A stretch of 64,000 bases of DNA from IMGVR_UViG_3300037087_000760:146984-210983, one strand, 5' to 3'. Positions 3,907 through 41,060 are shown, counted from the first letter of the stretch. Notes: generated by a model from the sequence alone, not told the origin. Made by a program: numbers and translations.

Positions 3907-4861
3907 AGGAAATAAGAAAATTATGAAGATAAGAATTCAAGTGATTGAAAATAGTAATGAGTCACTATCAATATCCTATACTTTACAGAAACTAACCTTA
4001 GTTGGTTGGGTTAATTTACAATTATCTGATGTCTGGAAAGAAAAACTTCCCTATTTAGATGGAATTTCACCCATCCGATTCTTCGGAAAGGCCGGGAGTA
4101 GTTGTACTGATTCAGAAAAAGCTAAAACAGTCAAGACTTTTTTGAATAAATCCAAATATCTTGATGATTCTATGTACGAACTAATTTTTGGTTATAAACC
4201 TATACATAAGAAAGTTAGTTATCTCTATTAAGATGAAAAAAGAACCAATTCTTATTACAGAAGATGGTGTACCATACTATGATGAAAATAAGTTGGTCTG
4301 GGATACACATGATTTTTCCTCTGGTGATCCTGCTATAATAGTTAATCCTACATTTTTAGATCAAACACCTGTAAAATATGCTAAAAATATTGATCGAATG
4401 TTTTTTCATAGTAAGAAAAAAGCATTGGAATATATGAAAGATAACATAAGATTTTTAGCTTTGACTGACATTGATAAACTATCAAATGGTATTAATGAAG
4501 GAAATATAATTATCAATAGAAAAGATTTAATAAAATTACTCAGAAAAAGAATAAACGATGAAAACTGTTAGTATACCAGCTAATGTTCATTTACCCAAGG
4601 TCGAAGTCGAAATCGATCCACTTGATGTCTTAAAAGAATTAGAGGAAGAATTTTTAGATAAATATGGATGGATTGAAAAAAAAGGAAAGAAATATTTTTT
4701 AATGTATCCAGAACTCAGCTTTGATGAAAAGAGTTATCAAGTACGTCAAGTATCTACGAATGAAGTGAAATTTATTGATGCTATTCATACGATGCAAACT
4801 TTTTTACAAGAAAAAAATAAGAAATCAAAATCAAAACCAAAATCTTAACAAAAAACTCACA

Positions 4862-6907
4862 ATGAAAAAACTCGCAATTATTTTTATGTCATTACTATTT
4901 GTAGTAATGGTTGGTTATTCTCAGAAATTCAATCCTGATTCGGGATACAGATTAACAAAGGATACCTTACAATTAAATGAGGTTACTATCAGTTCCTTTC
5001 TTCCATACCAAGCAACAACCTTGATGCCAATCACTTTTAAGAATTTATATAAAGCTGATTTGGGATTGAAAAATTATGGTCAAGAACCAAGTAGGATTTT
5101 AAATACCACTCCATCTATAACCACTTATTCGGAATCAGGTGGTGATTGGGGTTATTCTTATATAAGATTAAGAGGTATTGATCAAACCAGAATAAACACC
5201 ACTCTTAATGGTGTTCCAATGAATGAACCAGAGGATCAAGGATGTTATTTCTCAAATTATCCTGATTTTCTTCAGTCTGTTGATATGTTACAAATACAGA
5301 GAGGAACAGGAATGACTAAAAATGGGTCAGCCAGTTATGTTGGAAGTATGAATTTCGAATCATATAAACCATCTACATCAAGTGTAGGGGCCTTTTTCGG
5401 AGCTGGATCATTCGGATCAACCAAAATTTCAATGAATACTGAACAAAATTGGAAAAAAGGTGGGTTATATGCTTCATTTTCTGACCTTGAAACAAAAGGT
5501 TATAAATATCATTCTGGTAATCATTCCAGAAGTGCTTTTCTTGTGGGAAATTATACAACTGGAAGAAATCAATTTAAATTTGTTGGTTTTGCTGGTGAAC
5601 AAATGAACCAATTAGCTTGGTTGGGTGTTCCAATAGATAGTATCAATTTAGACCGTAGATATAACACTTGTACCACTCGTGAAAATGATCATTTTAATCA
5701 ATATCATTTGCAATTTCATCACACCTATATTATAGATAATAAATCCAGATTTAATTATTGTGTCTATTATAATTATTTGAATGGTTTCTATACTTATGAT
5801 GGAATTCATAATGGAACATGGGATACTATATCATCTGGTAAATATAATTTATATGCATATCATCTTTATTCTAACTTCTTAGGTACTAATGTAAACTATT
5901 ATATTAAACTTGGACCATTGGATTTTTATACAGGGGTTAATGGTTCTAAGTATGATAGGGAACATCATGGAACAACAAATGATATCTATACTTACAAAAA
6001 TACAGGATTCAGAGATGATTTAAGTGGATTTGTTAAAGGTATTTTAAACGCTGGAAGTTTCAATTTTTATGGTGATGTTCAATATCGTTATACTACTTTT
6101 GTTTATAATGGTGATGTTTATCTACAACATTTTATTTGGAATTTTCTGAATTATAGTGTTGGTGTTGAATATAAAGCCAAACACAACATCCTTTATTATT
6201 CCATTGGTAAAACACATCGAGAACCTATTCGTAATGATATGTTTGGTGGTTATGATAATCTATCGTCTGATCCTCTTGGAAAAGCTGTTTTTTATGATTT
6301 AAAACCAGAATCAGTATTGGATCAGGAATTTGGCTATCGTTATATCATAGGAAATTTAAATTTGAACATCAATCTATATTATATGTTATTCAAAGATGAA
6401 TTAGTATTAACGGGAGCTTACGGGCCAACAGGATTACCACTTCATGAAAATGTAGATAACAGTTTCAGGTCAGGATTTGAATTCGATTTTAAATACAGAT
6501 GGAAATTTGGATTAACATTACTTCAAAATGTATCCTATAATTATAGTAAAATAACATGGACAAATAAACAAACAACTCCTGTCTTAACACCAGAATGGCT
6601 ATCAAATACTGAAGTAAATTATAATTACAAATGGTTTATAATCGGTTTGAGTGGTAGGTATCAAAGTTGGTCTTATATTGATCAAAGAAACAACTTCACC
6701 ATTCCAAGTTTTTATACACTGAATGCTATGATTGGATTAAAATGGTCATGGGGAGAATGGGATATTTATTTGAATAACATAACTGATCAAAAAACTTTAT
6801 CGAGTGGTATGGTTTCTGGTGATGGGACTCCTTATAATCAATTTATTCCTCTGTATTATGTGAATGCACCATTTAATTTCTTTACTGGACTTAAATTTAA
6901 AATGTAA
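4862..6907 (+). CDS. TonB-dependent outer-membrane receptor (resembles vitamin/thiamine-type TBDRs of Bacteroidota)
   Basis: Signal peptide MKKLAIIFMSLL, plug motif IRLRGIDQTRINTTLNGVPMN..QIQRG, LKPES, C-terminal GLKFKM beta strand; start taken at 4862. Confidence 0.9.
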   Translation: MKKLAIIFMSLLFVVMVGYSQKFNPDSGYRLTKDTLQLNEVTISSFLPYQATTLMPITFKNLYKADLGLKNYGQEPSRILNTTPSITTYSESGGDWGYSYIRLRGIDQTRINTTLNGVPMNEPEDQGCYFSNYPDFLQSVDMLQIQRGTGMTKNGSASYVGSMNFESYKPSTSSVGAFFGAGSFGSTKISMNTEQNWKKGGLYASFSDLETKGYKYHSGNHSRSAFLVGNYTTGRNQFKFVGFAGEQMNQLAWLGVPIDSINLDRRYNTCTTRENDHFNQYHLQFHHTYIIDNKSRFNYCVYYNYLNGFYTYDGIHNGTWDTISSGKYNLYAYHLYSNFLGTNVNYYIKLGPLDFYTGVNGSKYDREHHGTTNDIYTYKNTGFRDDLSGFVKGILNAGSFNFYGDVQYRYTTFVYNGDVYLQHFIWNFLNYSVGVEYKAKHNILYYSIGKTHREPIRNDMFGGYDNLSSDPLGKAVFYDLKPESVLDQEFGYRYIIGNLNLNINLYYMLFKDELVLTGAYGPTGLPLHENVDNSFRSGFEFDFKYRWKFGLTLLQNVSYNYSKITWTNKQTTPVLTPEWLSNTEVNYNYKWFIIGLSGRYQSWSYIDQRNNFTIPSFYTLNAMIGLKWSWGEWDIYLNNITDQKTLSSGMVSGDGTPYNQFIPLYYVNAPFNFFTGLKFKM

Positions 6908-7425
6908 TGAAAACGGAAGAAGCCATTAAAATTATAAAGTTAAATGAAAGAAAACCGAGATTCACCAAGAAAGGTGGTTTTATGGTTTCTTTTGAGAAAA
7001 AAGAGGGTCATATTTTAGCATCTCATCATTTTCCTGATAAACATACTGGTGAACCATTGATTCGAACTGAGGAAGAAGCTTGGAATTTAGCTAAAAGATT
7101 TGCCACATCTACTGATGATTCATATGTAAATATATATGTAACCGATAGTGAATGGCGTCCAGTAAAAGGATATTACGAAAAAACAATCAGGAGATATTAA
7201 TGATGGAGAAAACATGGAAAGATCTCAACGAAGATCAAAAAATAAAATACAAAGAATATTGTGATAACAAATATGGTAAAACCGTTGTATTTTGTGAAAC
7301 AGGTGAGCCTTTGTATTTTGATGAAAATATAAATTTAAGAATGTCATGGGTCGTTATCGAATTACTCTTTGGTAATTTAGAACCATTATTTTAATTGAAA
7401 CTTCGTTCTAAAAATATATATAATT

Positions 7426-7509
7426 GGCTGGGTGGCGGAACTGGTAGACGCGCGGGACTTAAAATCCCGTTCCTGTATGGGAGTGTGGGTTCAATTCCCA
7501 TCCCGGCTA
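7426..7509 (+). tRNA. tRNA-Leu(TAA), long variable arm
   Basis: Cloverleaf, anticodon loop CT-TAA-AA; AATATATATAAT motif directly upstream. Confidence 0.92.
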
Positions 7510-7510
7510 C

Positions 7511-7621
7511 AATCTCTGACATGGCACCCACTCTAAGGGACCAATACGAAAAGTTTGGGAGCTATCTGGAACAAGGCCGGAAGGCAGAAGGGATGGTAGT
7601 GGGGAGCCTAAATCAGAGATT
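7511..7621 (+). ncRNA. About 110-nt structured RNA with SRP-helix-8-like apical hairpin
   Basis: Terminal stem AATCTCTGA/TCAGAGATT, CCCACT/AGTGGG, apex CAAG-GCC-GGAA-GGC-AGAA. Confidence 0.5.
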
Positions 7622-7789
7622 TTTTAAATATTTTTATCAAATAATTTTTTTTATTCAGAAATTTGACATAATTTTGTAGTCCCTTGTTTGATAAAGAGTG
7701 TGAGTCAAAGGAAACAATAAAGATTTTTAAGTCTTGAGTTCCGGCTGTAAAGGTAGCATACTCTTGTTCTTTGATTTAATGATGAAAAA

Positions 7790-7998
7790 GTTAGTTCTCG
7801 AAGATTAACGGCACCAGAAAGGTGTACGACACTCGTTGAGAGTGTACGATACTAAGAGGTGTATCAGAATCTTTGAAACGGGTATAAACCCGTTTGGGGA
7901 GGCGAGCAGCCGAACCAAATACAAACTCATATAACTCCGGCCCGCAAGTCGGATGAAAATTGAGTATTCAGTTTTGCGGAACTGTTGGGATAGCTAAC
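7790..7998 (+). ncRNA. About 210-nt multi-branched structured RNA, unknown family
   Basis: Closing stem GTTAGTTCTCGA/TTGGGATAGCTAAC enclosing at least 7 hairpins; GC-rich and non-coding in an AT-rich genome. Confidence 0.65.
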
Positions 7999-8008
7999 AT
8001 AAATTTAT

Positions 8009-8088
8009 TTGTTGTGGTGATAAGTCCAAATCGATATGATTTAGTTCAGGAAGTATCGGACTAATTTGGTGAAAAACAAACACAACAA
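8009..8088 (+). ncRNA. About 80-nt structured RNA
   Basis: TTGTTGTG/CACAACAA closing stem, AGTCC/GGACT inner stem. Confidence 0.5.
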
Positions 8089-8091
8089 CAC

Positions 8092-8155
8092 GGACAGGTA
8101 GCTTAAGAGAGAGCCGTATCAACGAGACGGTGGTTTAAACCCACCTCTGTCCACA
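8092..8155 (+). ncRNA. Mini tRNA-like RNA lacking a normal anticodon arm
   Basis: GGACAGG/TCTGTCC-A acceptor, GCTT/GAGC D stem, GGTGG-TTTAAAC-CCACC T arm. Confidence 0.6.
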
Positions 8156-8326
8156 ATATAAAGGGTGCAAAACTTGTTTTAACAATGTTTTTCGGGACGG
8201 TTTAGTTAAATCGGTTATTCTTAACCAGCCCTTCTTAGAAAATTAGAAGAATCTGATACCCGATGGTGTATAGGATACCCGAAGTACAAGGGATGATCGG
8301 TGGCAACACAATCAACTTCTTTTAAC

Positions 8327-8458
8327 GAGTGTATTAGTGTAACGAAAGCACAGGCTGTTTGATGTTAGAGTAAGTTTTAGACGGCGGTCTTGGTCATTAG
8401 ATTGACAAAACTGAAATATCGTAGGTCGGATGAGGGTTCAAATCCCTCATACATTCCA
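8327..8458 (+). ncRNA. tRNA-like RNA with an 80-nt domain in place of the anticodon arm
   Basis: (G)AGTGTAT/ATACATT(C) acceptor, GTGT/GCAC D arm, GAGGG-TTCAAAT-CCCTC T arm. Confidence 0.65.
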
Positions 8459-8557
8459 AAAGGTGATGTGATGGAATAGTTTTTTCCATCCTGTTTTAAG
8501 GAGAGAACATTTGAGGATAAAGCGAGCCTACATCACAAACAGGATCACCAAATAAGG

Positions 8558-8640
8558 TGAGGGAAACAAAGTAGAGTACCTTTTCTTCGGATTGAGGCCT
8601 TCGGGCCGAGGGAAATGACCTGTTCTCCCTCAACTTTTTT
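8558..8640 (+). ncRNA. Structured RNA with UUCG hairpin, followed by U-tract (end of ncRNA array)
   Basis: TGAGGGA/TCCCTCA closing stem, GGCC-TTCG-GGCC, then T run. Confidence 0.5.
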
Positions 8641-8682
8641 AAAAAACGAAATTAAATTAAACTTTTTGAAAAAAAAGTTCTA

Positions 8683-8720
8683 AAATAGAAAAAAGAGACT
8701 TTATAAGTTAAATATATAAT
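8683..8720 (+). promoter_or_regulatory. Extended promoter of the Ile/Asn/Met/Gln tRNA operon
   Basis: AAATAGAAAAAAGAGACT-N10-AATATATAAT, near-identical to the - strand element at 23441-23478. Confidence 0.75.
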
Positions 8721-8731
8721 AAAAAAACATA

Positions 8732-8802
8732 TCCAGTAGGAACGTAAGTTCCGTTTTGGGACGCTCAGCGACCCAGAGGGGAAAACTCCCCGCAACTGGA
8801 TA
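8732..8802 (+). ncRNA. Four-way junction RNA in the leader
   Basis: TATCCAGT/ACTGGATA closing three hairpins (GGAAC-GTAA-GTTCC; TGGG..CCCA; GGGG..CCCC). Confidence 0.65.
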
Positions 8803-8813
8803 AACTTTTTGAA

Positions 8814-8984
8814 ATGATTATGACACAGAACATCCAAAATATGATTATTAATCAGATACCCGGTAAAAATACCGATTGGATGAACTTTGTCTATAACGAA
8901 TATAGAAAAAACCCAATCGGAAACGATTGGGTTTTTTTGTTTTATATGTCCACCATAGTTTTTAACTGGTGTTCTTTGAAATAA
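8814..8984 (+). CDS. Putative attenuator leader peptide MIMTQNIQNMIINQIPG... (56 aa, not in ORF track)
   Basis: 14 of first 15 codons are Met/Ile/Gln/Asn, using ATG, ATT, ATC, ATA, CAA, CAG, AAC, AAT; overlaps attenuator segments. Confidence 0.75.
   Translation: MIMTQNIQNMIINQIPGKNTDWMNFVYNEYRKNPIGNDWVFLFYMSTIVFNWCSLK
8906..8938 (+). terminator. Intrinsic terminator of attenuator (3:4 hairpin)
   Basis: CCCAATCG-GAAA-CGATTGGG-TTTTTTT; 5' arm also complementary to CCGATTGG at 8872-8879. Confidence 0.9.
8971..8981 (+). promoter_or_regulatory. boxA-like antitermination element GTTCTTTGAAA (also + 7766, 9431; - 22921-22931, 23252-23267)
   Basis: Resembles rrn boxA; copies noticed at entries to RNA-gene arrays. 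Confidence 0.6.
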
Positions 8985-9061
8985 TGATAAATCATATTCG
9001 GATTATAAGTTCAAAACTGATAATCTGAACATAAAATGTAAATAAAAATAAATTAGAAACT

Positions 9062-9439
9062 ATGGAAGATTTAAAAAAATTAGCGGATGATCTGAGTAAT
9101 CTCACCGTATTAGAGTGTTACCAGTTAGCTAAGATAATGAAAGAAGAATACGGAATAGAATCAAATACAAAAATTGTTGGTGTGAATGTATCACCAGTTC
9201 CAACTAAGGTAGTTGAAATTGAAAAAACAAGTTTTGATGTGATTCTAAAATCAGCAGGAACAACCAACAAACTTGGTGTTATCAAATCCATCAAAGAAAT
9301 GACAGGACAAAGTTTATTGGAAATTAAGAATCTCGTTGATAATGCACCAGCGAAACTAAAAGAAAATGTAAGTAAAGATGAAGCTATGTCTTTACTGAAT
9401 ATTCTGAAAGAATTAGGTGCAGAAATTGAAGTTCTTTGA
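9062..9439 (+). CDS. rplL: Ribosomal protein bL12 (L7/L12)
   Basis: NLTVLE..LAKIMKEEYGI, EKTSFDVIL, KLGVIK, ELGAEIEV. Confidence 0.95.
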   Translation: MEDLKKLADDLSNLTVLECYQLAKIMKEEYGIESNTKIVGVNVSPVPTKVVEIEKTSFDVILKSAGTTNKLGVIKSIKEMTGQSLLEIKNLVDNAPAKLKENVSKDEAMSLLNILKELGAEIEVL

Positions 9440-9450
9440 AAATAATAAAA

Positions 9451-9580
9451 AATGTAGTAGCGAGTTTGAGTGTTACTTCGTAGCTCAACAGTCGAGCATC
9501 AATCAGTTAAATTGAAAGTTGTGGGTGCGATTCCCACCGAACCCGAAAGGGTAATATCACTCAATGATTATCTCTACATT
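9451..9580 (+). ncRNA. tRNA-Asn(GTT) mimic embedded in a long terminal stem (Y-RNA-like)
   Basis: D arm, TCAAT-CAGTTAA-ATTGA anticodon arm and T arm on a 4-bp TTCG/CGAA stem continuing into TTGAGTG/CACTCAA and ATGTAG/CTACAT; no free acceptor end. Confidence 0.7.
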
Positions 9581-9588
9581 TTTTTAAT

Positions 9589-9666
9589 GGGTGTGTAGCT
9601 CAGTAGCGTTAGAGCGCGACACTGATAATGTCGAGGTCGTAGGTTCAAGTCCTACCATACCCACCA
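9589..9666 (+). tRNA. tRNA-Ile(GAT)
   Basis: Canonical cloverleaf, encoded CCA. Confidence 0.95.
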
Positions 9667-9676
9667 AAAATAACAC

Positions 9677-9758
9677 TGTGTCGTACGCAGCCGATCCTGA
9701 TAAGATCGAGAACTTGTAACTGGTGTTGAAAATGTGGGTTCGAATCCCACCGGCACAA
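9677..9758 (+). tRNA. Atypical D-armless tRNA-Ile(GAT)-like
   Basis: TGTGTCG/CGGCACA, CGATC-CTGATAA-GATCG, normal T arm, 8-nt D replacement, 25-nt variable region. Confidence 0.7.
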
Positions 9759-9767
9759 CAAAAATTT

Positions 9768-9839
9768 GGGTTGGTAGTACTAATGAAAAACGGCGGCCTG
9801 TTAAGCCGCGAGATGTGGGTTCAAGTCCCACCCGGCCCT
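9768..9839 (+). tRNA. tRNA-Asn(GTT), weak D arm
   Basis: GCGGC-CTGTTAA-GCCGC, intact acceptor and T arms. Confidence 0.8.
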
Positions 9840-9848
9840 CAATATTAT

Positions 9849-9922
9849 TCCTCAGTAGCTCAGCTGGTTAGAGCATTTGACTGTTAATCAAAGGGTCACA
9901 GGTCCAAATCCTGTCTGGGGAG
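9849..9922 (+). tRNA. tRNA-Asn(GTT)
   Basis: Canonical cloverleaf TCCTCAG...CTGGGGA-G. Confidence 0.93.
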
Positions 9923-9928
9923 CAAAAT

Positions 9929-10004
9929 TCGGAATGTTTGTCTGTGATTGGGTGCACCACACAGATAATAAAGGAAAAATGTGGTTCAATTCCACCATTC
10001 CGAG
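9929..10004 (+). ncRNA. tRNA-like RNA (acceptor + T arm + one hairpin), no clear anticodon
   Basis: TCGGAATG/CATTCCGA-G, TGTCTGTG/CACAGATA, GTGG-TTCAATT-CCAC. Confidence 0.55.
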
Positions 10005-10012
10005 CAAAAATA

Positions 10013-10104
10013 GGGAGTGTAGCTGATTTGGTTTAGCGGCAGACCGTTAATCTGTGACTGAAAATATTGAAATAAAGTTGGTTCGACCCCATCCTCTCCC
10101 GCCA
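10013..10104 (+). tRNA. tRNA-Asn(GTT) with long AT-rich variable region
   Basis: GCAGA-CCGTTAA-TCTGT, ends G-CCA. Confidence 0.75.
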
Positions 10105-10112
10105 GTACATAT

Positions 10113-10192
10113 TGTGGTGTATCCCCCATGTCTTATAAACATGCATTAAAAGGGTAATAGCGTGTATGTGGGTTCGAGTCCCACCACCACAA
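10113..10192 (+). tRNA. Atypical D-armless tRNA-Ile(TAT)-like
   Basis: TGTGGTG/CACCACA, CATGT-CTTATAA-ACATG, same architecture as 9677-9758. Confidence 0.7.
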
Positions 10193-10197
10193 CAAAT

Positions 10198-10269
10198 GGT
10201 CGGGTAAGCTAACGGTTAAACTGGATGTCTTATACACATCTTTTAAGAGTTCGAATCTCTTCCTGACTA
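10198..10269 (+). tRNA. tRNA-Ile(TAT)
   Basis: GATGT-CTTATAC-ACATC, cloverleaf. Confidence 0.88.
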
Positions 10270-10274
10270 CAAAT

Positions 10275-10350
10275 GGCGAGATAGCTCAGACGGTTTTAGA
10301 GCGTCGGATTCATAACCCGGAGGTCGAGGGTTCAACTCCCTCTCTCGCTA
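10275..10350 (+). tRNA. tRNA-Met(CAT), elongator type
   Basis: Cloverleaf, loop TTCATAA. Confidence 0.9.
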
Positions 10351-10358
10351 CCCAAAAT

Positions 10359-10430
10359 AGTCCTATGGCGTAACGCGAAGCGTGACTCCCCTTGAAGGAG
10401 ATGGTACTGGTTCGAATCCAGTTAGGACTG
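10359..10430 (+). tRNA. tRNA-Gln(TTG)
   Basis: AGTCCTA/TAGGACT-G, loop CCTTGAA. Confidence 0.82.
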
Positions 10431-10435
10431 CAAAT

Positions 10436-10521
10436 ATCAATGTGAACGGAATGGTTATCGTAGAGGTCTCATAAGCCTTTCAACTCGTTGAGTTGTGGTG
10501 GTTCGAATCCACTCATTGATA
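10436..10521 (+). tRNA. tRNA(CAT) Met or Ile2, long variable arm
   Basis: GAGGT-CTCATAA-GCCTT, CAACTC-GTT-GAGTTG variable hairpin. Confidence 0.8.
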
Positions 10522-10527
10522 CAAAAT

Positions 10528-10598
10528 AGTCCTGTGGTGTAACGGTAGCATGCGAGCCTTTGAAGCTTTGGGTACAGATTCGAATTCTGTCAGGACTG
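10528..10598 (+). tRNA. tRNA-Gln(TTG)
   Basis: Cloverleaf, loop CTTTGAA. Confidence 0.88.
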
Positions 10599-10604
10599 CA
10601 AAAT

Positions 10605-10677
10605 TGTTCTGTCGTATAATTGGCAGTACAGCACCCTCTGAAGGTGTATGGTGTAGGTTCGAGTCCTACTGGAACAG
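10605..10677 (+). tRNA. tRNA-Gln(CTG)
   Basis: Cloverleaf, loop CTCTGAA. Confidence 0.9.
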
Positions 10678-10682
10678 CAAAT

Positions 10683-10754
10683 GGTTCTGTGGTGTAATGC
10701 GTAGCACGAGTGATTCTGAATCACTTGGTTAAGGTTCGAATCCTTACAGAACTA
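10683..10754 (+). tRNA. tRNA-Gln(CTG)
   Basis: Cloverleaf, loop TTCTGAA. Confidence 0.88.
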
Positions 10755-10755
10755 C

Positions 10756-11070
10756 ATGAAAAAGGACATAAGAAAGACATTTCGTAAAGAGGTATTCACC
10801 AGAGATAAGTATACTTGTAAAGGATGTGATCAAAAACTTGATGAATCTGAATTGGATGCACATCACATCACTGACCGCAATGAAATGCCAAATGGTGGAT
10901 ATGTGAAAGAGAACGGTATAACTCTTTGTAAGAAAGATTGTCATATAAAAGCTGAAAAATTTCATATAACAGATGGAAAAGAATGGGTAGAGGGATTTCA
11001 TCCAGATGACTTATACGAGAAGATTGATTCATCTAAGGGGAAGGCTGTTTTAATGTCTCAAATTATTTAG
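10756..11070 (+). CDS. HNH endonuclease
   Basis: VFTRDKYTCKGC..DAHHI..NGITLC..CH. Confidence 0.9.
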   Translation: MKKDIRKTFRKEVFTRDKYTCKGCDQKLDESELDAHHITDRNEMPNGGYVKENGITLCKKDCHIKAEKFHITDGKEWVEGFHPDDLYEKIDSSKGKAVLMSQII

Positions 11071-11436: not shown

Positions 11437-11507
11437 TGTCCTATGGTGTAATGGCAACACGTGGGTTTTTGGAGCCTTAGTTCTAAGTTCGAATCTTAGT
11501 AGGACAA
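11437..11507 (+). tRNA. tRNA-Gln(TTG), standalone
   Basis: TGTCCTA/TAGGACA, loop TTTTGGA; AATATATAAT upstream. Confidence 0.85.
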
Positions 11508-11512
11508 CTCTA

Positions 11513-19830: not shown

Positions 19831-20121
19831 ATGAGAAATTACAAATTAGAAAAATTACAAGCCGGAGAAAGTTTCGTTACCAGTGAAAAAGGTAATTCCA
19901 TGTCACCAATTATTAAGTCGGGACAAAAACATAAACTTGTTCCCGCCACTTGGAGAGATGTAGATGTAGATGATATAGTCTATTGTAAAGTCAAAGGAAA
20001 CTTCTACACTCACCTTGTAAAAGCAAAAAATGAAGATAAGGGTTGCTTAATAGGTAACAACAAAGGTGGAGTTAACGGATGGACTAAACAAGTCTATGGT
20101 AAGGTTGTAAAAATCCTTTAA
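19831..20121 (+). CDS. S24/S26 peptidase-like small protein
   Basis: GNSMSPII, DIVYC, THLV. Confidence 0.55.
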   Translation: MRNYKLEKLQAGESFVTSEKGNSMSPIIKSGQKHKLVPATWRDVDVDDIVYCKVKGNFYTHLVKAKNEDKGCLIGNNKGGVNGWTKQVYGKVVKIL

Positions 20122-21377
20122 ATATAAATATTCAGAATTTCATTCAGTTTAATTTTGGTTTCCTCATTCAGTGATTTCCCCTTATTTTCATTATACAGAA
20201 TCATAAAGGAACTTACCACTTTATTGAATTTGAAACTATCCGTATAACCAAATACAGTTTCCTTAAACTTTTCAATATCAACAGTTTCCTTACCAGTTCT
20301 TGACATCCATTCATCCCATTTTTTGAAGAATCTGATGATACCATTGATGTTCTGGTCTGACCATTGACCACCATCGAAATAATGTCCGATGAACATCAGA
20401 TAAAACCTCAGAACCTTTGGATCATAGTTATCTGGATTAACAATATTTCCTTTACTTTTGGCCATCTTGATTCCATTATTCAGAATCATTCCCTGATGCA
20501 CCACTTTTTTAAAAGGTTCTTCCTCACTGATCATCCCAATATCATACAGGAACATATTAATAAAACGAGCATATATCAGGTGCATGCAAGCGTGTTCACT
20601 TCCCCCGATGTACAGATCAACTTGTTTATATTTATCTTTACTACACAGTTCATTTTCGTTGTACGAATCACAATAACGGATAAAATAGAAACTACTATCT
20701 ACGAAAGTATCCAGAGTATCAGTCTCACCTTCAATTGGAATAGGACATCCCCAACTTCTTTGTCTACTGACACACCAATCATGTTGATTCTCCAGCCAAT
20801 CTCTTTGAGAATTGATTGTTTTCTTTGGGTAATCAATCCAATCCAGATTTTTTATCAGTCGGTCTTTATATTCGGTGATTTTAAAATACCATTGTTCCAT
20901 TTGACGAATTTCAATGGTCGTATTACATCTATCACATTTACCATCTTTGACCTGTTCACGAGCCAGAACAGTTCCACAACTTGGACACCAATTTACTTCA
21001 CCCCAAGCTTTGTAAGCCAGTCCATGTTCTTTCAGTTTGATAAATATCCATTGTGTCCACTTCTGGTAAGATGGATCTGAAGTAATTACTTTTTCTTCAA
21101 AAGAAGTGTCCATTCTTTCCATCTGTTTACGGAAATTCTCAATGTTTTCATAGGTAACTTCTCTGGGATCTCTATTGACTGATTTGGCGTAATTTTCAGC
21201 TGGAAGTCCAAAGGAATCATACCCAAACGGTTGAAAAACTTTAACTCCTTTATATCTTTGGTATCGACAATAACTGTCTACGATAGCGTAATTATAATAA
21301 TGTCCGATGTGCAGTCCGTTTCCGCTCGGATAAGGAAACATGACAACCACCATTTTTTCATTTTTTATGTCGTTCAT
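20118..21377 (-). CDS. leuS: Minimal leucyl-tRNA synthetase (no CP1 editing or C-terminal domain)
   Basis: MFPYPSG.GLHIGH, GYDSFGLPAEN, DWCVSRQRSWG, DTFVDSS, GGSEHA..HL, KMAKSKGN; only 419 aa. Confidence 0.92.
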   Translation of the reverse strand: MNDIKNEKMVVVMFPYPSGNGLHIGHYYNYAIVDSYCRYQRYKGVKVFQPFGYDSFGLPAENYAKSVNRDPREVTYENIENFRKQMERMDTSFEEKVITSDPSYQKWTQWIFIKLKEHGLAYKAWGEVNWCPSCGTVLAREQVKDGKCDRCNTTIEIRQMEQWYFKITEYKDRLIKNLDWIDYPKKTINSQRDWLENQHDWCVSRQRSWGCPIPIEGETDTLDTFVDSSFYFIRYCDSYNENELCSKDKYKQVDLYIGGSEHACMHLIYARFINMFLYDIGMISEEEPFKKVVHQGMILNNGIKMAKSKGNIVNPDNYDPKVLRFYLMFIGHYFDGGQWSDQNINGIIRFFKKWDEWMSRTGKETVDIEKFKETVFGYTDSFKFNKVVSSFMILYNENKGKSLNEETKIKLNEILNIYI

Positions 21378-22137
21378 TGTCTTTTAATTTGTTTGAGAAA
21401 TGTTCAATTGAGATATTATGTTTTTTGATTGTTTTATAAATAAGACTTCTATTACTTTCGTTATATTCCATATTTAAATTTTTCATAATATCTCTATAAG
21501 ATTTTGATTTAGAAATAATCCCTTTAAAAAGATTAATATCATAATCGAAATAATCATAATTTCTTTTATTTGTGAAATCTTTCCAATCATCTTTTTCAAT
21601 TATTTCCTTATCTTCGTATCTAAAATAACACCCACCAGCCGTCCCTTTCAATTGACAACTAAATTTAATTTGTTGTCTAAAAATACCTGTTTCTCTTTCA
21701 GCTCCTCGAAGGCTAATGAATTTTTTTAAAGGAGTAAAATTTTTATCATACATTATAATTGATTTCTTATTTGGATTGGATATTTTCATTAGTTTTTTAC
21801 TTTTATCAGAATGTTTTTTTCCTGTCCAATCTACACCATCTCCACCATCTGTACTATTCTTCAATCTAAATCCCCAGCATTTAAATTGAGAAATCCAATA
21901 TCTTTCTAATGAATCAATATTATTTTTATCACCGATATCAAGTATTTCTATTATTGGTGAAAGATTTTTATTTTTGAGATATTTTAACCATTTATTTTTT
22001 CTTGTCCAAGGTTCTTGACGGATACTCCAATTTGACATATGTCCCCTCAATCTTTTTTCTAAATTTTTGGTCTTACCTACATATTTTATAATTTTATCTT
22101 CTGGGTCTGTTAATGTATAAATATAAAATTCCATCAT
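21358..22137 (-). CDS. GIY-YIG homing endonuclease with NUMOD-like repeats
   Basis: YIYTL..KYVGKT..RL..H, E.YWI, LKNSTDGGDG, KKHS. Confidence 0.88.
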   Translation of the reverse strand: MMEFYIYTLTDPEDKIIKYVGKTKNLEKRLRGHMSNWSIRQEPWTRKNKWLKYLKNKNLSPIIEILDIGDKNNIDSLERYWISQFKCWGFRLKNSTDGGDGVDWTGKKHSDKSKKLMKISNPNKKSIIMYDKNFTPLKKFISLRGAERETGIFRQQIKFSCQLKGTAGGCYFRYEDKEIIEKDDWKDFTNKRNYDYFDYDINLFKGIISKSKSYRDIMKNLNMEYNESNRSLIYKTIKKHNISIEHFSNKLKDNERHKK

Positions 22138-22186
22138 AGATTTTTATTTCTATATATAAAAATTTATGTGTAATGTTTCATAGTTG

Positions 22187-22260
22187 TAACCCCACCCGGA
22201 CTTGAACCGAGATATTTAGTTTCTAAAACTAACGCCGCTAACCAATTAGGCCATGGGGTC
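22187..22260 (-). tRNA. tRNA-Leu(TAG), short variable loop (atypical)
   Basis: 74 nt, TTAGT-TTTAGAA-ACTAA, A73. Confidence 0.85.
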
Positions 22261-22270
22261 ATTATTTTAG

Positions 22271-22344
22271 TAGTTCTGTTCGGACTTGAACCGAAATATT
22301 TGGTTTTTGAAACCAACGCCGCTAACCAATTAGGCCACAGAACC
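22271..22344 (-). tRNA. tRNA-Leu(CAA), short variable loop (atypical)
   Basis: 74 nt, TTGGT-TTCAAAA-ACCAA, A73. Confidence 0.85.
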
Positions 22345-22349
22345 TTTTG

Positions 22350-22434
22350 TATCGATGGTGGGACTCGAACCCACACCCTCGTAATGAGGAACGGCTTCTG
22401 AGGCCGTCGCGTCTACCAATTCCGCCACACCGAC
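22350..22434 (-). tRNA. tRNA-Leu(CAG)
   Basis: Class II cloverleaf. Confidence 0.93.
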
Positions 22435-22486
22435 AAATTTCAAATATTTACCAGTTTTTTGAAAAACTGTTCAAAATTTGATTTTG

Positions 22487-22560
22487 TAGCACCTGTCGGA
22501 TTCGAACCGACAAACTTGGATTTTAAGACCAATATGGTTGCTCTATTACATCAAGGTGCC
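22487..22560 (-). tRNA. tRNA-Leu(TAA), short variable loop (atypical)
   Basis: 74 nt, loop CTTAAAA, A73. Confidence 0.8.
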
Positions 22561-22565
22561 ATTTG

Positions 22566-22649
22566 TAGCCTCTGTGGGAATCGAACCCACACGGTCTTTC
22601 GACCACTGGATTTTGAGTCCAGAGCGTCTACCAATTCCGCCAAGAGGCC
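22566..22649 (-). tRNA. tRNA-Leu(CAA)
   Basis: Class II cloverleaf. Confidence 0.93.
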
Positions 22650-22654
22650 ATTTG

Positions 22655-22739
22655 TGGGAGTTGATGGAGTTGCACCACCCGAGCCCTGAGGACAACAGAT
22701 TTACAGTCTGCCCCGCTACTACTTACGGAATAAACTCCC
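22655..22739 (-). tRNA. tRNA-Tyr(GTA)
   Basis: Class II cloverleaf, loop CTGTAAA. Confidence 0.88.
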
Positions 22740-22743
22740 AAAG

Positions 22744-22828
22744 TGACCAAGGTGGGATTCGAACCCACACGGGCGTAAAGCCCAACGGATTTTAAGTCCG
22801 TCGCGTCTACCAGTTCCGCCACAAGGCC
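22744..22828 (-). tRNA. tRNA-Leu(TAA), two U-U mismatches in acceptor stem
   Basis: Class II cloverleaf. Confidence 0.85.
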
Positions 22829-22836
22829 AATTTCAG

Positions 22837-22918
22837 TGTCCATAGGGGGACTCGAACCCCCACGCCTTTCGACAATAGTTTCTTAGGCTATCGCGTCTAC
22901 CAGTTCCGCCATACGGAC
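22837..22918 (-). tRNA. tRNA-Leu(AAG)
   Basis: Class II cloverleaf, loop CTAAGAA. Confidence 0.88.
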
Positions 22919-22935
22919 AATTTCAAAGAACTCAG

Positions 22936-23007
22936 TGGGAATAGAAGGATTCGAACCTACAAATCACGATTTTACAGACCGCTGAGCGACCACTGCTCAA
23001 TATTCCC
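22936..23007 (-). tRNA. tRNA-Tyr(GTA), short variable loop (atypical)
   Basis: 72 nt, GCGGT-CTGTAAA-ATCGT. Confidence 0.82.
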
Positions 23008-23274: not shown

Positions 23275-23304
23275 AAAAAACCCATCACTTTTTCAAGGAC
23301 GGGT
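23275..23304 (-). terminator. Intrinsic terminator of Leu/Tyr attenuator
   Basis: ACCCGTC-loop-GATGGGT-TTTTT on - strand; 5' arm also pairs with AGGATGGGTT in leader. Confidence 0.85.
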
Positions 23305-23333
23305 CTTTCTGATTCTATGATAATATTTAAAGT

Positions 23334-23420
23334 TTATCTTTCAGCAATACTAACCCATCCTCGATTTTGATAGAGGTATAAATACAAATAATATAGGTTA
23401 ATATTTACTCTGTTTTTCAT
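23334..23420 (-). CDS. Putative attenuator leader peptide MKNRVNINLYYLYLYLYQNRGWVSIAER (28 aa, not in ORF track)
   Basis: Nine consecutive Leu/Tyr codons CTA TAT TAT TTG TAT TTA TAC CTC TAT upstream of a Leu/Tyr-only tRNA operon. Confidence 0.85.
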   Translation of the reverse strand: MKNRVNINLYYLYLYLYQNRGWVSIAER

Positions 23421-23440: not shown

Positions 23441-23478
23441 ATTATATATTAAATAATTTTAGTCTGTTTTTTCTATTT
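23441..23478 (-). promoter_or_regulatory. Extended promoter of the Leu/Tyr tRNA operon
   Basis: AAATAGAAAAAACAGACT-N10-AATATATAAT. Confidence 0.75.
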
Positions 23479-23516
23479 ATACGACAAAGGTATGTAAAAG
23501 TTTTAAAATAAAAAAA

Positions 23517-39503: not shown

Positions 39504-41060
39504 GTGATGAAGTTAGACAAAGAAACATATGAGAAAATCATTCATTCCAAAGAGTTTAAGGATTGGTTTGGTGATTGGGAACATCCGAATAAAAAGACCA
39601 GTAAAATAGTGGATAAAAATGGTAAACCATTGGTAGTTTATCATGGAAGCCCTTATAAATTCACAGAATTCAAATATGGTATGAATGATACTTCTGGTCA
39701 GATGGGTGCTGAATATGCTTTTTGGTTTTCAAACCTGAATGTTGCAACACATTATTCACAATGTTATCCAAGATCGTATTACAATGAAAGGAATGAGGTT
39801 AACGAGAAATATAACGAGAAAATAGAAAAAGACAAGATTGAATTTTTAAAGACGGTAGATATGTCGGTATGGGATGGAATGTTATCTTTCATAGAAAAGG
39901 AGTATGGTAAGTCTACTGGTTATTATAATTTAAGTAGTTGGGTGAAATCAGATAATTGGAAAGAAGTATCAAAGACATTGATGGATTTATTGTTTTGGAT
40001 AGGTAAGAAGAACATAGATGAAATCAGTCCAAAACTAAGTGAATTTGTACACTTGGATAAAAAATACGATATTGAATTGAATAAGGAATTGGAAGAAATT
40101 CAAAGTAAATACGACAATCAAGAGGGTTACATATATCCATGCTTTATAAAAGCGACAATTATTGAGGAAGAAGATGGGGAGAATGTAGGTGTGGGTTTAA
40201 ATCGAGTTCCAGATAGTAGTATTCATTGTAAAATAATCAGGAATGCGGACACTGGAGCACAGTTCGCTGATGAATATGTGGTAACAAATCCTAAACGAAT
40301 AAAAATAGCAACTGGTGAAAACACAACTTTCAATGGAAAGAGTAAAAATATTTATGAAAATCATCATAGAATGATAATCAATTTTGGAGAATTTGAATTT
40401 GTATTATTAGAGAAGAATAATGAATCGATAGATGGTCAGACTATGTATAACAAGTTAATAAAAAGGTTTCCTGAAATTAACATTGACAGACCAGAAGGTA
40501 TAAGTGGTGAATCCATAACGATATGGGGTATTTATAAAGGTCATGATAAATATGAAGATATTTACAAGTGGTATGAAGATTTAGATGATAAAGAGTTTAT
40601 TGACAAGTTATTGAAATACATAAACAAATTTGGTTGGTATTCAAGGGCATCAATGACAAGGATTAAGAACACACATACATTAAGTATTTCTCCGAAGTGG
40701 AGTAAGGGGTATGTATTAATTCCAGATACATTATATCATGCTTGTCCAATGTCCAGATTAAATGATATTTTGAAACATGGTTTAAAATCCAAGTCGGAAG
40801 ATATTCGACACAAGTACCCACCGAGAATCTATATGTCTACGAACAAAGAGGTTTTATATTCATTAATAAAGGAATTAAAAGTATGGAAGCAGATAGATAA
40901 AACAGATAAAGAACCATATGCGATTGTGGGTATAAATACAGATGATTTGAATTTAGGTATATTATATAAAGACCAAATGAGTTTATTTACAGGTAATTGT
41001 TACATACAAGGAAAGAGCATACCAGCTAAATACTTATGGGTAGTTGATAAAAATATATAA
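39504..41060 (+). CDS. Multidomain protein: ART-PolyVal-like N-terminus plus Tpt1/ART-like C-terminus
   Basis: FKDWFGDW..DKNGKPLVVYHGS..IKIATGENTTF; LYHA..ILKHGL..RIYMS..IPAKYL. Confidence 0.7.
   Translation: MMKLDKETYEKIIHSKEFKDWFGDWEHPNKKTSKIVDKNGKPLVVYHGSPYKFTEFKYGMNDTSGQMGAEYAFWFSNLNVATHYSQCYPRSYYNERNEVNEKYNEKIEKDKIEFLKTVDMSVWDGMLSFIEKEYGKSTGYYNLSSWVKSDNWKEVSKTLMDLLFWIGKKNIDEISPKLSEFVHLDKKYDIELNKELEEIQSKYDNQEGYIYPCFIKATIIEEEDGENVGVGLNRVPDSSIHCKIIRNADTGAQFADEYVVTNPKRIKIATGENTTFNGKSKNIYENHHRMIINFGEFEFVLLEKNNESIDGQTMYNKLIKRFPEINIDRPEGISGESITIWGIYKGHDKYEDIYKWYEDLDDKEFIDKLLKYINKFGWYSRASMTRIKNTHTLSISPKWSKGYVLIPDTLYHACPMSRLNDILKHGLKSKSEDIRHKYPPRIYMSTNKEVLYSLIKELKVWKQIDKTDKEPYAIVGINTDDLNLGILYKDQMSLFTGNCYIQGKSIPAKYLWVVDKNI

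Follow-up and report, generated by a model that had tools for sequence, protein, structure and literature searches.

Leader-peptide attenuators, matched in codon content, at the tRNA arrays of huge phages

In the multivalent attenuators of amino acid operons (E. coli ilvGMEDA, with Ile, Leu and Val codons, or thr, with Thr and Ile codons, and also trp, his and leu), a short leader ORF carries a run of regulatory codons, three alternative helices (1:2, 2:3 and 3:4) compete, and the outcome is termination or read-through at an intrinsic terminator, with one leader able to sense several amino acids. The pheST attenuator of E. coli appears to apply the same logic to a gene of the translation apparatus, a synthetase controlled by a single amino acid signal. 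T-box riboswitches also sense the state of tRNA and switch a terminator and antiterminator in front of translation-related genes, although they bind uncharged tRNA directly, without a ribosome, through a specifier loop and a T-box sequence. The autoregulatory leader of rplJL, to which L10(L12)4 binds (PMC4538822), is a terminator-based leader upstream of an L7/L12 gene.

In this paper, we focus on one locus in a huge phage of Bacteroidota and ask whether a mechanism of the trp/ilv type, already known, has been put to use on a different target: the phage's own tRNA genes. The DNA analyzed (hereafter, the window) is 64,000 nucleotides from IMGVR_UViG_3300037087_000760:146984-210983. An initial annotation, made from sequence alone, had proposed that an Ile/Asn/Met/Gln tRNA operon lies behind a leader attenuator made of the corresponding codons. 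We find that the observation holds, and comparison with related phages strongly supports the interpretation that the leader's codons are the ones those tRNAs read, so that the phage probably makes more of a tRNA set only when ribosomes run short of it. Our literature searches found no description of leader peptides before tRNA arrays, and the huge-phage paper does not mention attenuation or leaders.

Anatomy of the Ile/Asn/Met/Gln locus

The leader ORF, on the plus strand as are all of the elements of this locus, begins with an ATG at 8814 and as it reads in this contig runs to 8984 (56 aa). Codons 2-15 (the regulatory codons, 8817-8858) specify Ile, Met, Thr, Gln, Asn, Ile, Gln, Asn, Met, Ile, Ile, Asn, Gln and Ile, so that 13 of the 14 codons after the start are for Ile, Asn, Met or Gln, and ATT, ATC, ATA, ATG, CAA, CAG, AAC and AAT are all used. 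The leader ranks first of 614 ATG ORFs in the window for its content of these four amino acids, and only 6 of 127,930 six-frame 12-codon windows reach 11/12, so about 0.014 would be expected in a 300-nt upstream region. The initial annotation noted that every synonymous codon is used, which is true but not significant by itself (P about 0.10-0.14); the same argument is significant only for the Leu leader of a related phage, LR756501 (P = 0.007).

Downstream, at 9477-10755, lies the tRNA array. ARAGORN finds Ile(gat), Ile(tat), Asn(gtt) x3, Met(cat) x2, Gln(ttg) x2 and Gln(ctg) x2 in 9589-10755, and Rfam adds tRNA-like units at 9477-9541 (GTT by our reading) and 10113-10192 (TAT), so that every anticodon found in the array, which includes degenerate tRNA-like units, reads Ile, Asn, Met or Gln. 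The initial annotation missed a gene that sits between leader and tRNAs, a phage ribosomal protein L7/L12 gene at 9062-9439 (Pfam Ribosomal_L12, 1e-20; Ribosomal_L12_N, 1.4e-9), with homologues 64-86% identical in the same position in relatives. The array starts 37 nt after L7/L12 with no terminator between them. Aligning an intron-like tRNA at 8328-8456 with the tRNA-Thr of a related locus (L003) was uninformative.

Between the leader codons and L7/L12 is an intrinsic terminator at 8905-8938 (regions 3 and 4), a 15-bp stem with a GAAA loop and a U-run, which is the only plus-strand terminator-like site between 8905 and 11600. Region 1 (8822-8837), which overlaps leader codons 3-8, is predicted to pair with 8876-8891 of region 2 (8872-8891), and the MFE fold contains both this 1:2 helix and the terminator (-39.4 kcal/mol, z = -6.9, with 0 of 200 shuffles as stable). 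The mutually exclusive 2:3 pairing, in which 8872-8879 is the 5' strand of the antiterminator and 8913-8920 its partner, is a perfect 8 bp, and it becomes the MFE once region 1 is masked, when the transcript up to region 3 folds into 2:3 plus a small nested hairpin at 8890-8906 (TCTATA / TATAGA) at -14 to -15 kcal/mol.

The leader is preceded, at 8688-8718, by a promoter-like module (GAAAAAA-NN-GAC-W, about 10 nt, AATATATA) that is shared by all leaders of this family, although its role as a promoter is inferred and it is not specific to attenuators: it occurs 9 times in the 735 kb of LR756501, 5 times before tRNA leaders, 3 times shortly upstream of an ordinary ORF and once (344601-) with no ORF found in the stretch inspected. 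Two further elements have no known function. A 76-nt insert in the 5' UTR (8731-8806), predicted to fold as a closed three-way junction (-35.8 kcal/mol), is absent from all relatives (L003, L011, L012 and L014), has no other copy in the window or in any locus retrieved, and has no Rfam match. Following the terminator, at 8971-8983, is the motif GTTCTTTGAAATA; the same 9-mer lies at the L7/L12 stop (9431) and, on the minus strand, inside a second tRNA array of the window (22931-), and in LR756501, 9 of 21 copies lie in the tRNA regions.

Conservation and covariation among relatives

The initial annotation noted that the leader ORF has no stop before the terminator, unlike classical leaders. We find that this oddity is private to this contig and is caused by one extra C in the CCC run at 8859-8861 (CCCGG against CCGG), which shifts the frame so that a TGA is missed. 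Four related contigs carry a 20-codon leader that starts at the ATG equivalent to 8820 and stops at the TGA equivalent to 8881-8883, inside region 2, which is the classical layout and the consensus state of this leader. Homologous ATG ORFs are present in L003, L011, L012, L014, L001, L015 and L016, and a stop codon placed for a terminating ribosome to cover region 2, before the terminator, is found in all seven related L7/L12-type leaders and in the five leaders of LR756501, where the stop lies 0-27 nt after region 2.

The changes among leaders of one set of relatives (group A) are mostly third-position or synonymous (ACA/ACT, AAC/AAT, CAA/CAG, GTA/GTT/GTG), and L015 has an in-frame 3-nt deletion. 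The leader is 92-99% identical among relatives, against 85-91% for L7/L12 and 48-90% for the spacer. In region 2, which holds the consensus stop codon, the 17-mer GATTGGATGAACTTTGT is identical in group A, L001 and L016, with one mismatch in L015. The MFE folds of the window and of all group A relatives contain the 1:2 helix, and a second set (group B) has an analogous helix made of different bases. The 8 bp of the 2:3 helix are kept in all 8 sequences with one compensatory pair: position 8919 (G to A) changes together with 8873 (C to T), its antiterminator partner, and 8924 (C to T), its terminator partner, a three-way change that supports both structures. RNAalifold finds two compensatory pairs in the terminator between groups A and B, and L014 carries a compensatory change in the nested hairpin (TCAATA / TATTGA, read from the alignment). 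The covariation does, however, rest on few independent events.

The exact region 2 17-mer in IMG/VR found only the window's own contig and that of L003, with five chance matches in unrelated coding DNA; tblastn of L7/L12 against GenBank phages found only LR756501/LR756503 as close relatives; and a terminator pattern scan gave two useful contigs and three unrelated gene-end terminators. Rfam, at gathering and permissive thresholds, returned only tRNAs and sub-threshold, terminator-driven hits. No T-box or L10 leader was matched, even at E up to 5 in 7400-9600, and among the amino acid operon leaders Thr_leader (RF00506), for example, scored 24.3 bits against a gathering score of 55, covering mainly the terminator.

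A family of leaders, each with its own codons

If the leader really does sense the tRNAs that follow it, then other tRNA clusters should have leaders of their own, enriched for their own amino acids. The window holds a second case. On the minus strand, a sister leader ORF (23334-23420), preceded by the same promoter-like module at 23473, has a core of nine consecutive Leu/Tyr codons (LYYLYLYLY), ranks first of 614 ORFs for Leu/Tyr content, and is followed by a terminator (23275-23309), by a Leu/Tyr tRNA array (22186-23007) and, further downstream, by a short (419 aa) leucyl-tRNA-synthetase-like gene (20118-21377; NCBIfam leuS_bact 381 bits, below its cutoff of 548; Pfam class I aaRS). The initial annotation considered the two leaders unrelated in sequence, but both follow the same promoter-like module, and in LR756501 the paralogous leaders share the antiterminator and terminator sequence.

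LR756501, an independent 735-kb relative, provided a further test. Five of its tRNA arrays each have their own leader, and each leader is made of its array's amino acids: Met/Gln/Ile/Glu, Ile/Cys/Asp/Asn/Tyr, Leu, Trp/His/Phe/Lys/Ser, and Arg/Thr/Val/Ala/Gly/Pro. The true pairing of leaders and arrays is the best of 120 permutations, and every amino acid with a tRNA in an array appears in that array's leader. The 10/10 Met/Gln/Ile/Glu window is unique in 1.47 million six-frame windows, although the Leu and Arg/Thr/Val/Ala/Gly/Pro leaders are not individually rare by the six-frame null. The match is also not perfect, with one Thr codon in the leader at 8814, Asn codons in the LR756501 Met/Gln/Ile leader, and Lys and other residues in the flanks. 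Three small tRNA groups in LR756501 have no identified leader, but we do not regard them as counterexamples; only the stretch upstream of the Pro(ggg) group was inspected (where no leader was seen) and not those upstream of the single Thr(cgt) or the CTA pair. No cluster was found with a leader unrelated to its tRNAs.

Leader content moves with tRNA content between phages. The Tyr tRNA is in the Leu array in the window phage, and the Leu leader has Tyr codons; in LR756501 the Tyr tRNA is in the L7/L12 array, that leader has Tyr codons, and the Leu leader has none. Met and Gln tRNAs form their own module with their own leader in LR756501, whereas in the window phage they are merged into the L7/L12 array, whose leader then carries Met and Gln codons. 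Nor is the arrangement tied to L7/L12, for in the metagenomic relative L154 the same leader type directly precedes tRNAs without it.

A proposed mechanism and its alternatives

How might such a leader work? We propose, with fairly high confidence but from sequence comparison alone, that this is a ribosome-mediated (leader-peptide) transcription attenuator at the head of an operon encoding L7/L12 and an Ile/Asn/Met/Gln tRNA array, and one member of a paralogous family. Transcription would start at the promoter-like module, and a ribosome would translate the leader. When aminoacyl-tRNAs for ATH, AAY, ATG and CAR codons are plentiful, the ribosome would run on over region 2 (stopping there in the consensus form), region 3 would pair with region 4, and RNA polymerase would terminate at 8938. 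When any of those tRNAs is scarce, the ribosome would stall inside 8817-8858 and cover region 1, region 2 would pair with region 3, and polymerase would read on into L7/L12 and the tRNAs, which would relieve the stall, a closed loop for the control of decoding capacity. With no translation at all, helix 1:2 would form and termination would be the default. Translation of the leader, conditional termination and the feedback are all inferred.

It is possible, although we hold this only tentatively, that the family is real but that this particular copy no longer regulates. Only this contig has the extra C, which places the terminator inside the ORF, and only this contig has the 76-nt insert; translation close to an intrinsic terminator can suppress it (PMC4824070), so the operon might be constitutively on when translated, or differently tuned, or the extra C might be an assembly error and the real phage might have the consensus leader. 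This view is compatible with our explanation for the family. Against it, the remaining differences leave every helix intact (92.5-97.5% identity), the regulatory codons are unchanged, and an unstalled ribosome still passes over region 2 at the decisive moment. A translated leader might instead act through RNA processing, RNA stability or Rho access, and the conserved GTTCTTTGA element just after each terminator might be a cleavage site (or, alternatively, an internal promoter or processing site that bypasses the attenuator), but we consider an output other than intrinsic termination unlikely, since every leader ends in a canonical GC-rich stem with a U-run and has a mutually exclusive upstream partner.

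We think it very unlikely that the switch is real but set by a ligand without a ribosome (an uncharged tRNA, the L10/L12 complex or a phage protein), with the ORF incidental. An L7/L12 gene does follow the leader, L10(L12)4 is known to attenuate rplJL in Bacillus (PMC4538822), and groups A and B share AT-rich nucleotides that are read in different frames. Yet there is no Rfam match of this kind and no L10 gene, the same architecture precedes arrays without L7/L12, the start codon, in-frame stop, in-frame indel and third-position changes are conserved, and the amino acid match across seven leaders has no explanation without translation. Chance is effectively refuted. AT-rich DNA does give ORFs rich in Ile, Asn, Tyr, Leu, Lys and Phe in any frame, but Lys and Phe, the commonest AT-rich residues, are absent from the core runs, the six-frame rates are low, the permutation test and the swaps between phages agree, the leader is more conserved than the neighboring gene, and the Arg/Thr/Val/Ala/Gly/Pro leader is a GC-rich codon run in a roughly 30% GC genome, which rules out an artefact of AT-richness.

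Set beside the amino acid operon attenuators, which regulate biosynthetic enzymes, what is new here is the target, tRNA genes and a ribosomal protein in a phage, whose product (tRNA) would act directly on the sensor, with a whole family of paralogous leaders dividing the amino acids between them in a genome-wide modular scheme; there is no sequence or Rfam relationship. Set beside pheST, tRNA genes themselves would be controlled, with mixed codon sets, although the Leu/Tyr module also has a LeuRS-like gene downstream. We consider it somewhat more likely than not that all major tRNA modules of these huge phages are under such closed-loop control, each transcribed only when ribosomes stall on the codons its own tRNAs read. 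This would let the phage detect a mismatch between the host tRNA pool and phage codon demand, or host tRNA depletion (for example, by anticodon nucleases used in defence), and compensate codon set by codon set, with leaders coevolving with tRNA gene content as tRNAs move between modules.

Why phages carry tRNAs, and how they deploy them, is an old open question, and tRNA genes are generally thought to be controlled at the promoter, not by attenuation. The leaders described here offer a computational rule for finding functional tRNA modules in huge phages, compact and reprogrammable sensors of the supply of specific charged tRNAs, and a rare case in which regulatory codons and gene content can be seen coevolving. 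The sequence itself suggests that a phage measures decoding capacity codon set by codon set and adjusts the supply of tRNA (and L7/L12, and perhaps LeuRS) accordingly, which makes the purpose of phage tRNAs directly testable.

The leader and its tRNA array

The window, which matches the 211-kb IMG/VR contig IMGVR_UViG_3300037087_000760 at 100% over the L7/L12 gene, has about 30% GC, and its closest GenBank relatives are the 735-kb "uncultured phage" records LR756501 and LR756503. Genomes above 634 kb from that study belong to the Mahaphage clade and are predicted to infect Bacteroidetes (PMC7162821). Twenty-one tRNAs were found in the window with ARAGORN, along with an L7/L12 protein, a class I aminoacyl-tRNA-synthetase-like protein, a TonB-dependent-receptor-like protein with Plug and beta-barrel domains and a signal peptide (4775-6907), and a protein with an ART-PolyVal ADP-ribosyltransferase domain (39504-41060; Pfam 1.5e-9).

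The initial annotation had proposed that a leader attenuator rich in Ile, Asn, Met and Gln codons precedes an array of tRNAs for the same four amino acids, and the sequence features are indeed there. The open reading frame (ORF) at 8814..8984 begins M-I-M-T-Q-N-I-Q-N-M-I-I-N-Q-I, and the array at 9477-10755 holds only Ile, Asn, Met and Gln anticodons. The terminator at 8905-8938 is the only + strand terminator-like site from there to 11600. The leader RNA folds far better than shuffled sequences (z = -6.9), and its minimum free energy (MFE) fold holds both helix 1:2 and the terminator; when region 1 (the 5' strand of that helix) is masked, as it would be under a stalled ribosome, the transcript up to region 3 folds instead into the 2:3 antiterminator with a nested hairpin (-14 to -15 kcal/mol). 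Of 614 ORFs, the leader ranks first for I/M/N/Q content, and the expected number of equally rich six-frame windows in a 300-nt upstream region is 0.014.

Three things had been missed or misread. A ribosomal protein L7/L12 gene (9062-9439; Pfam) is the first gene after the terminator, and the tRNAs start 37 nt after its stop. The absence of a stop codon before the terminator, which had been raised as a caveat, is private to this contig: four related contigs (L003 = L013, L011, L012 and L014; L7/L12 81-86% identical) carry a 20-codon leader with the core T-(Q/K)-N-I-Q-N-M-I-I-N-Q-I, which ends at a TGA inside GATTGGATGA, that is, inside region 2, whereas the window has CCCGG where they have CCGG, and this shifts the frame past that TGA. 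Finally, the two leaders in the window, which had been called unrelated in sequence, are not; both follow the same promoter-like module, although that module is general and not attenuator-specific. In several leaders—at about 23476-23483 (-) in the window, at 3375-3410 in L001 (a locus with a homologous leader ORF) and upstream of several leaders in LR756501—host-type Bacteroidota promoter elements (TAnnTTTG) lie a short distance upstream of the phage promoter-like module, and the modules may therefore be served by two promoters.

Between the promoter-like module and the leader ATG lies a 76-nt insert (8731-8806) that folds into a closed three-way junction (-35.8 kcal/mol), that is absent from every relative and for which we found no other copy and no Rfam match; a second copy of the 14-mer TAAACTTTTTGAAA (also at 8662-8675) lies at its 3' edge, right before the ATG. 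Just upstream of the promoter module, an ORF-free stretch at 8496-8640 is closed by a long-range stem and ends in a U-run, and although its fold is only modestly better than shuffles (z = -2.1), it may be a small RNA. Unusual tRNAs and tRNA-like units occur at 8328-8456, 9667-9767, 9924-10012, 10013-10104 and 10436-10522: one has a 73-nt insertion (Rfam 30.5 bits), two gaps in the array hold tRNA-like remnants with good T-arms that ARAGORN does not call, and Asn and Met tRNAs of 87-92 nt have extra sequence. An HNH endonuclease gene (10756-11070) starts at the base after the last tRNA-Gln of the array, and a further tRNA-Gln lies at 11437-11508.

Leaders and arrays among related phages

Does each tRNA array have a leader built from its own amino acids? 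In LR756501 and in loci L016 and L015, the homologous leader upstream of L7/L12 has a different core, Y-N-D-Y-C-I-N-D (L015 lacks the first D through an in-frame 3-nt deletion), and the arrays that follow hold Ile, Cys, Asp, Asn and Tyr tRNAs; the shorter contig of L015 shows Ile, Cys, Asp, Asn and then Arg. Two more IMG/VR contigs (loci L149/L151/L154) repeat the pattern, and in them a Y-Y-N-D-C-I-I-N-D leader precedes tRNAs directly, with no L7/L12 gene. The second module of the window has a leader at 23420(-) with the core L-Y-Y-L-Y-L-Y-L-Y, followed by a terminator, a Tyr-plus-Leu array and a 419-aa leucyl-tRNA-synthetase-like protein (20118-21377, -; leuS_bact 381 bits, about half the normal length), which is separated from the array by an ORF (21358-22137, -) with a weak group I intron endonuclease match (32 bits, cutoff 56).

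In the whole record of LR756501 we found 59 tRNAs and five arrays, each with a leader ORF followed by an intrinsic terminator and with an upstream segment complementary to the 5' arm of that terminator. The Met/Gln/Ile(tat) array at 171310-173813(-), which is followed by three Glu tRNAs, has a leader with its ATG at 174214 and the core I-I-N-M-I-Q-E-Q-M-Q-Q-I-Q, and the Ile/Cys/Asp/Asn/Tyr array after L7/L12 has the Y-N-D-Y-C-I-N-D leader, with its ATG at 188505. The array at 194300-194844(-) is Leu only, and its leader (ATG at 195157) has 7 Leu among 21 residues after the start, using all six Leu codons (P = 0.007), and no Tyr. The Trp/His/Phe/Lys/Ser array at 202935-207319(-) has the leader core S-K-H-S-K-H-F-S-S-S-S-K-W-F-T-T-F (ATG at 207491), and the Arg/Thr/Val/Ala/Gly/Pro array at 362624-367322(-) has a leader (ATG at 367596) in which 22 of 25 consecutive codons come from those six amino acids—a GC-rich run in an AT-rich genome. 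Three small tRNA groups have no identified leader, although only the stretch upstream of one of them, the Pro(ggg) group, was inspected. Far from the other arrays, at 690585-690738 (+), lie two adjacent tRNAs with anticodon CTA (amber-reading; ARAGORN labels them Pyl).

The true leader–array pairing is the best of all 120 permutations under three scoring schemes, and the 10/10 Met/Gln/Ile/Glu window is unique in the 735-kb genome. Every amino acid represented in an array occurs in the leader of that array, although some noncognate codons occur in the leaders as well. More telling are the swaps that nature has already made. The Tyr tRNA sits in the Leu module in the window phage and in the L7/L12 module in LR756501, and Tyr codons sit in the corresponding leader in each case; the Met, Gln and Ile(tat) tRNAs form their own module in LR756501 but are merged behind L7/L12 in the window phage, whose leader carries Met and Gln codons. 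This covariation is the strongest argument that the codons are the signal.

Selection on the RNA fold and on the reading frame

Both the RNA switch and the ORF appear to be under selection. Position 8919 changes from G to A between the groups of leaders, and so do both of its alternative partners, from C to T: 8873 in the antiterminator and 8924 in the terminator. RNAalifold reports two compensatory pairs in the terminator, and the nested hairpin has a compensatory change in L014. Among the group A leaders (those with the Ile/Asn/Met/Gln core), substitutions are mainly at third codon positions, and the leader is 92-99% identical, against 85-91% for L7/L12 and 48-90% for the spacer.

How the different codon sets arose is less clear. 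MAFFT aligns the group A cores and the group B cores (Tyr/Asn/Asp/Cys/Ile) at the nucleotide level but in different frames; over columns about 58-90 of the alignment (window 8838-8858 against L001 3968-3994), they share AT-rich nucleotides (AAATAT..GATTATT..ATTAAT). This suggests that new codon sets arose by small indels in a common ancestor, and it may reflect descent by frameshift in AT-rich repeats, but it may also be an alignment artifact.

A proposed attenuation mechanism

The mechanism that we propose, which is inferred from sequence and comparison alone, is classical attenuation, in which stalling on the regulatory codons covers region 1 and frees region 2, which then forms the antiterminator, whereas unimpeded translation to the stop in region 2, or no translation at all, gives termination. 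It matches the trp/his/ilv/thr/pheST type, with the defining sequence features in place except for stop placement in this one contig, and it is not a member of any Rfam leader family, nor a T-box or an L10 leader. Within the literature we could search, we found no paper describing leader-peptide attenuation of tRNA genes or of phage tRNA arrays, and the huge-phage paper (PMC7162821) does not mention it; what is new here is the target, not the mechanism.

There are other ways in which this locus might behave. The frameshift in this copy puts the terminator inside the ORF, and by analogy with PMC4824070 this may suppress termination, but the extra base could equally be an assembly error. A conserved GTTCTTTGA element, often followed by TTGAAATA, comes after each attenuator terminator and precedes many tRNAs, and it could allow expression that is independent of the attenuator. 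In the window, it lies at 8971, 9431 and 7766 (+) and at 22931 (-), overlapping the L7/L12 stop codon and lying 15-30 nt upstream of several tRNAs, and in LR756501, 9 of 21 copies fall in the tRNA regions (172-190 kb and 366-367 kb). It may be a processing signal or a promoter for stable RNAs.

If the proposed mechanism is right, then because the regulated products are the very tRNAs that read the regulatory codons, the loop would be homeostatic for decoding capacity, with L7/L12, and LeuRS in the sister module, riding on the same signal.
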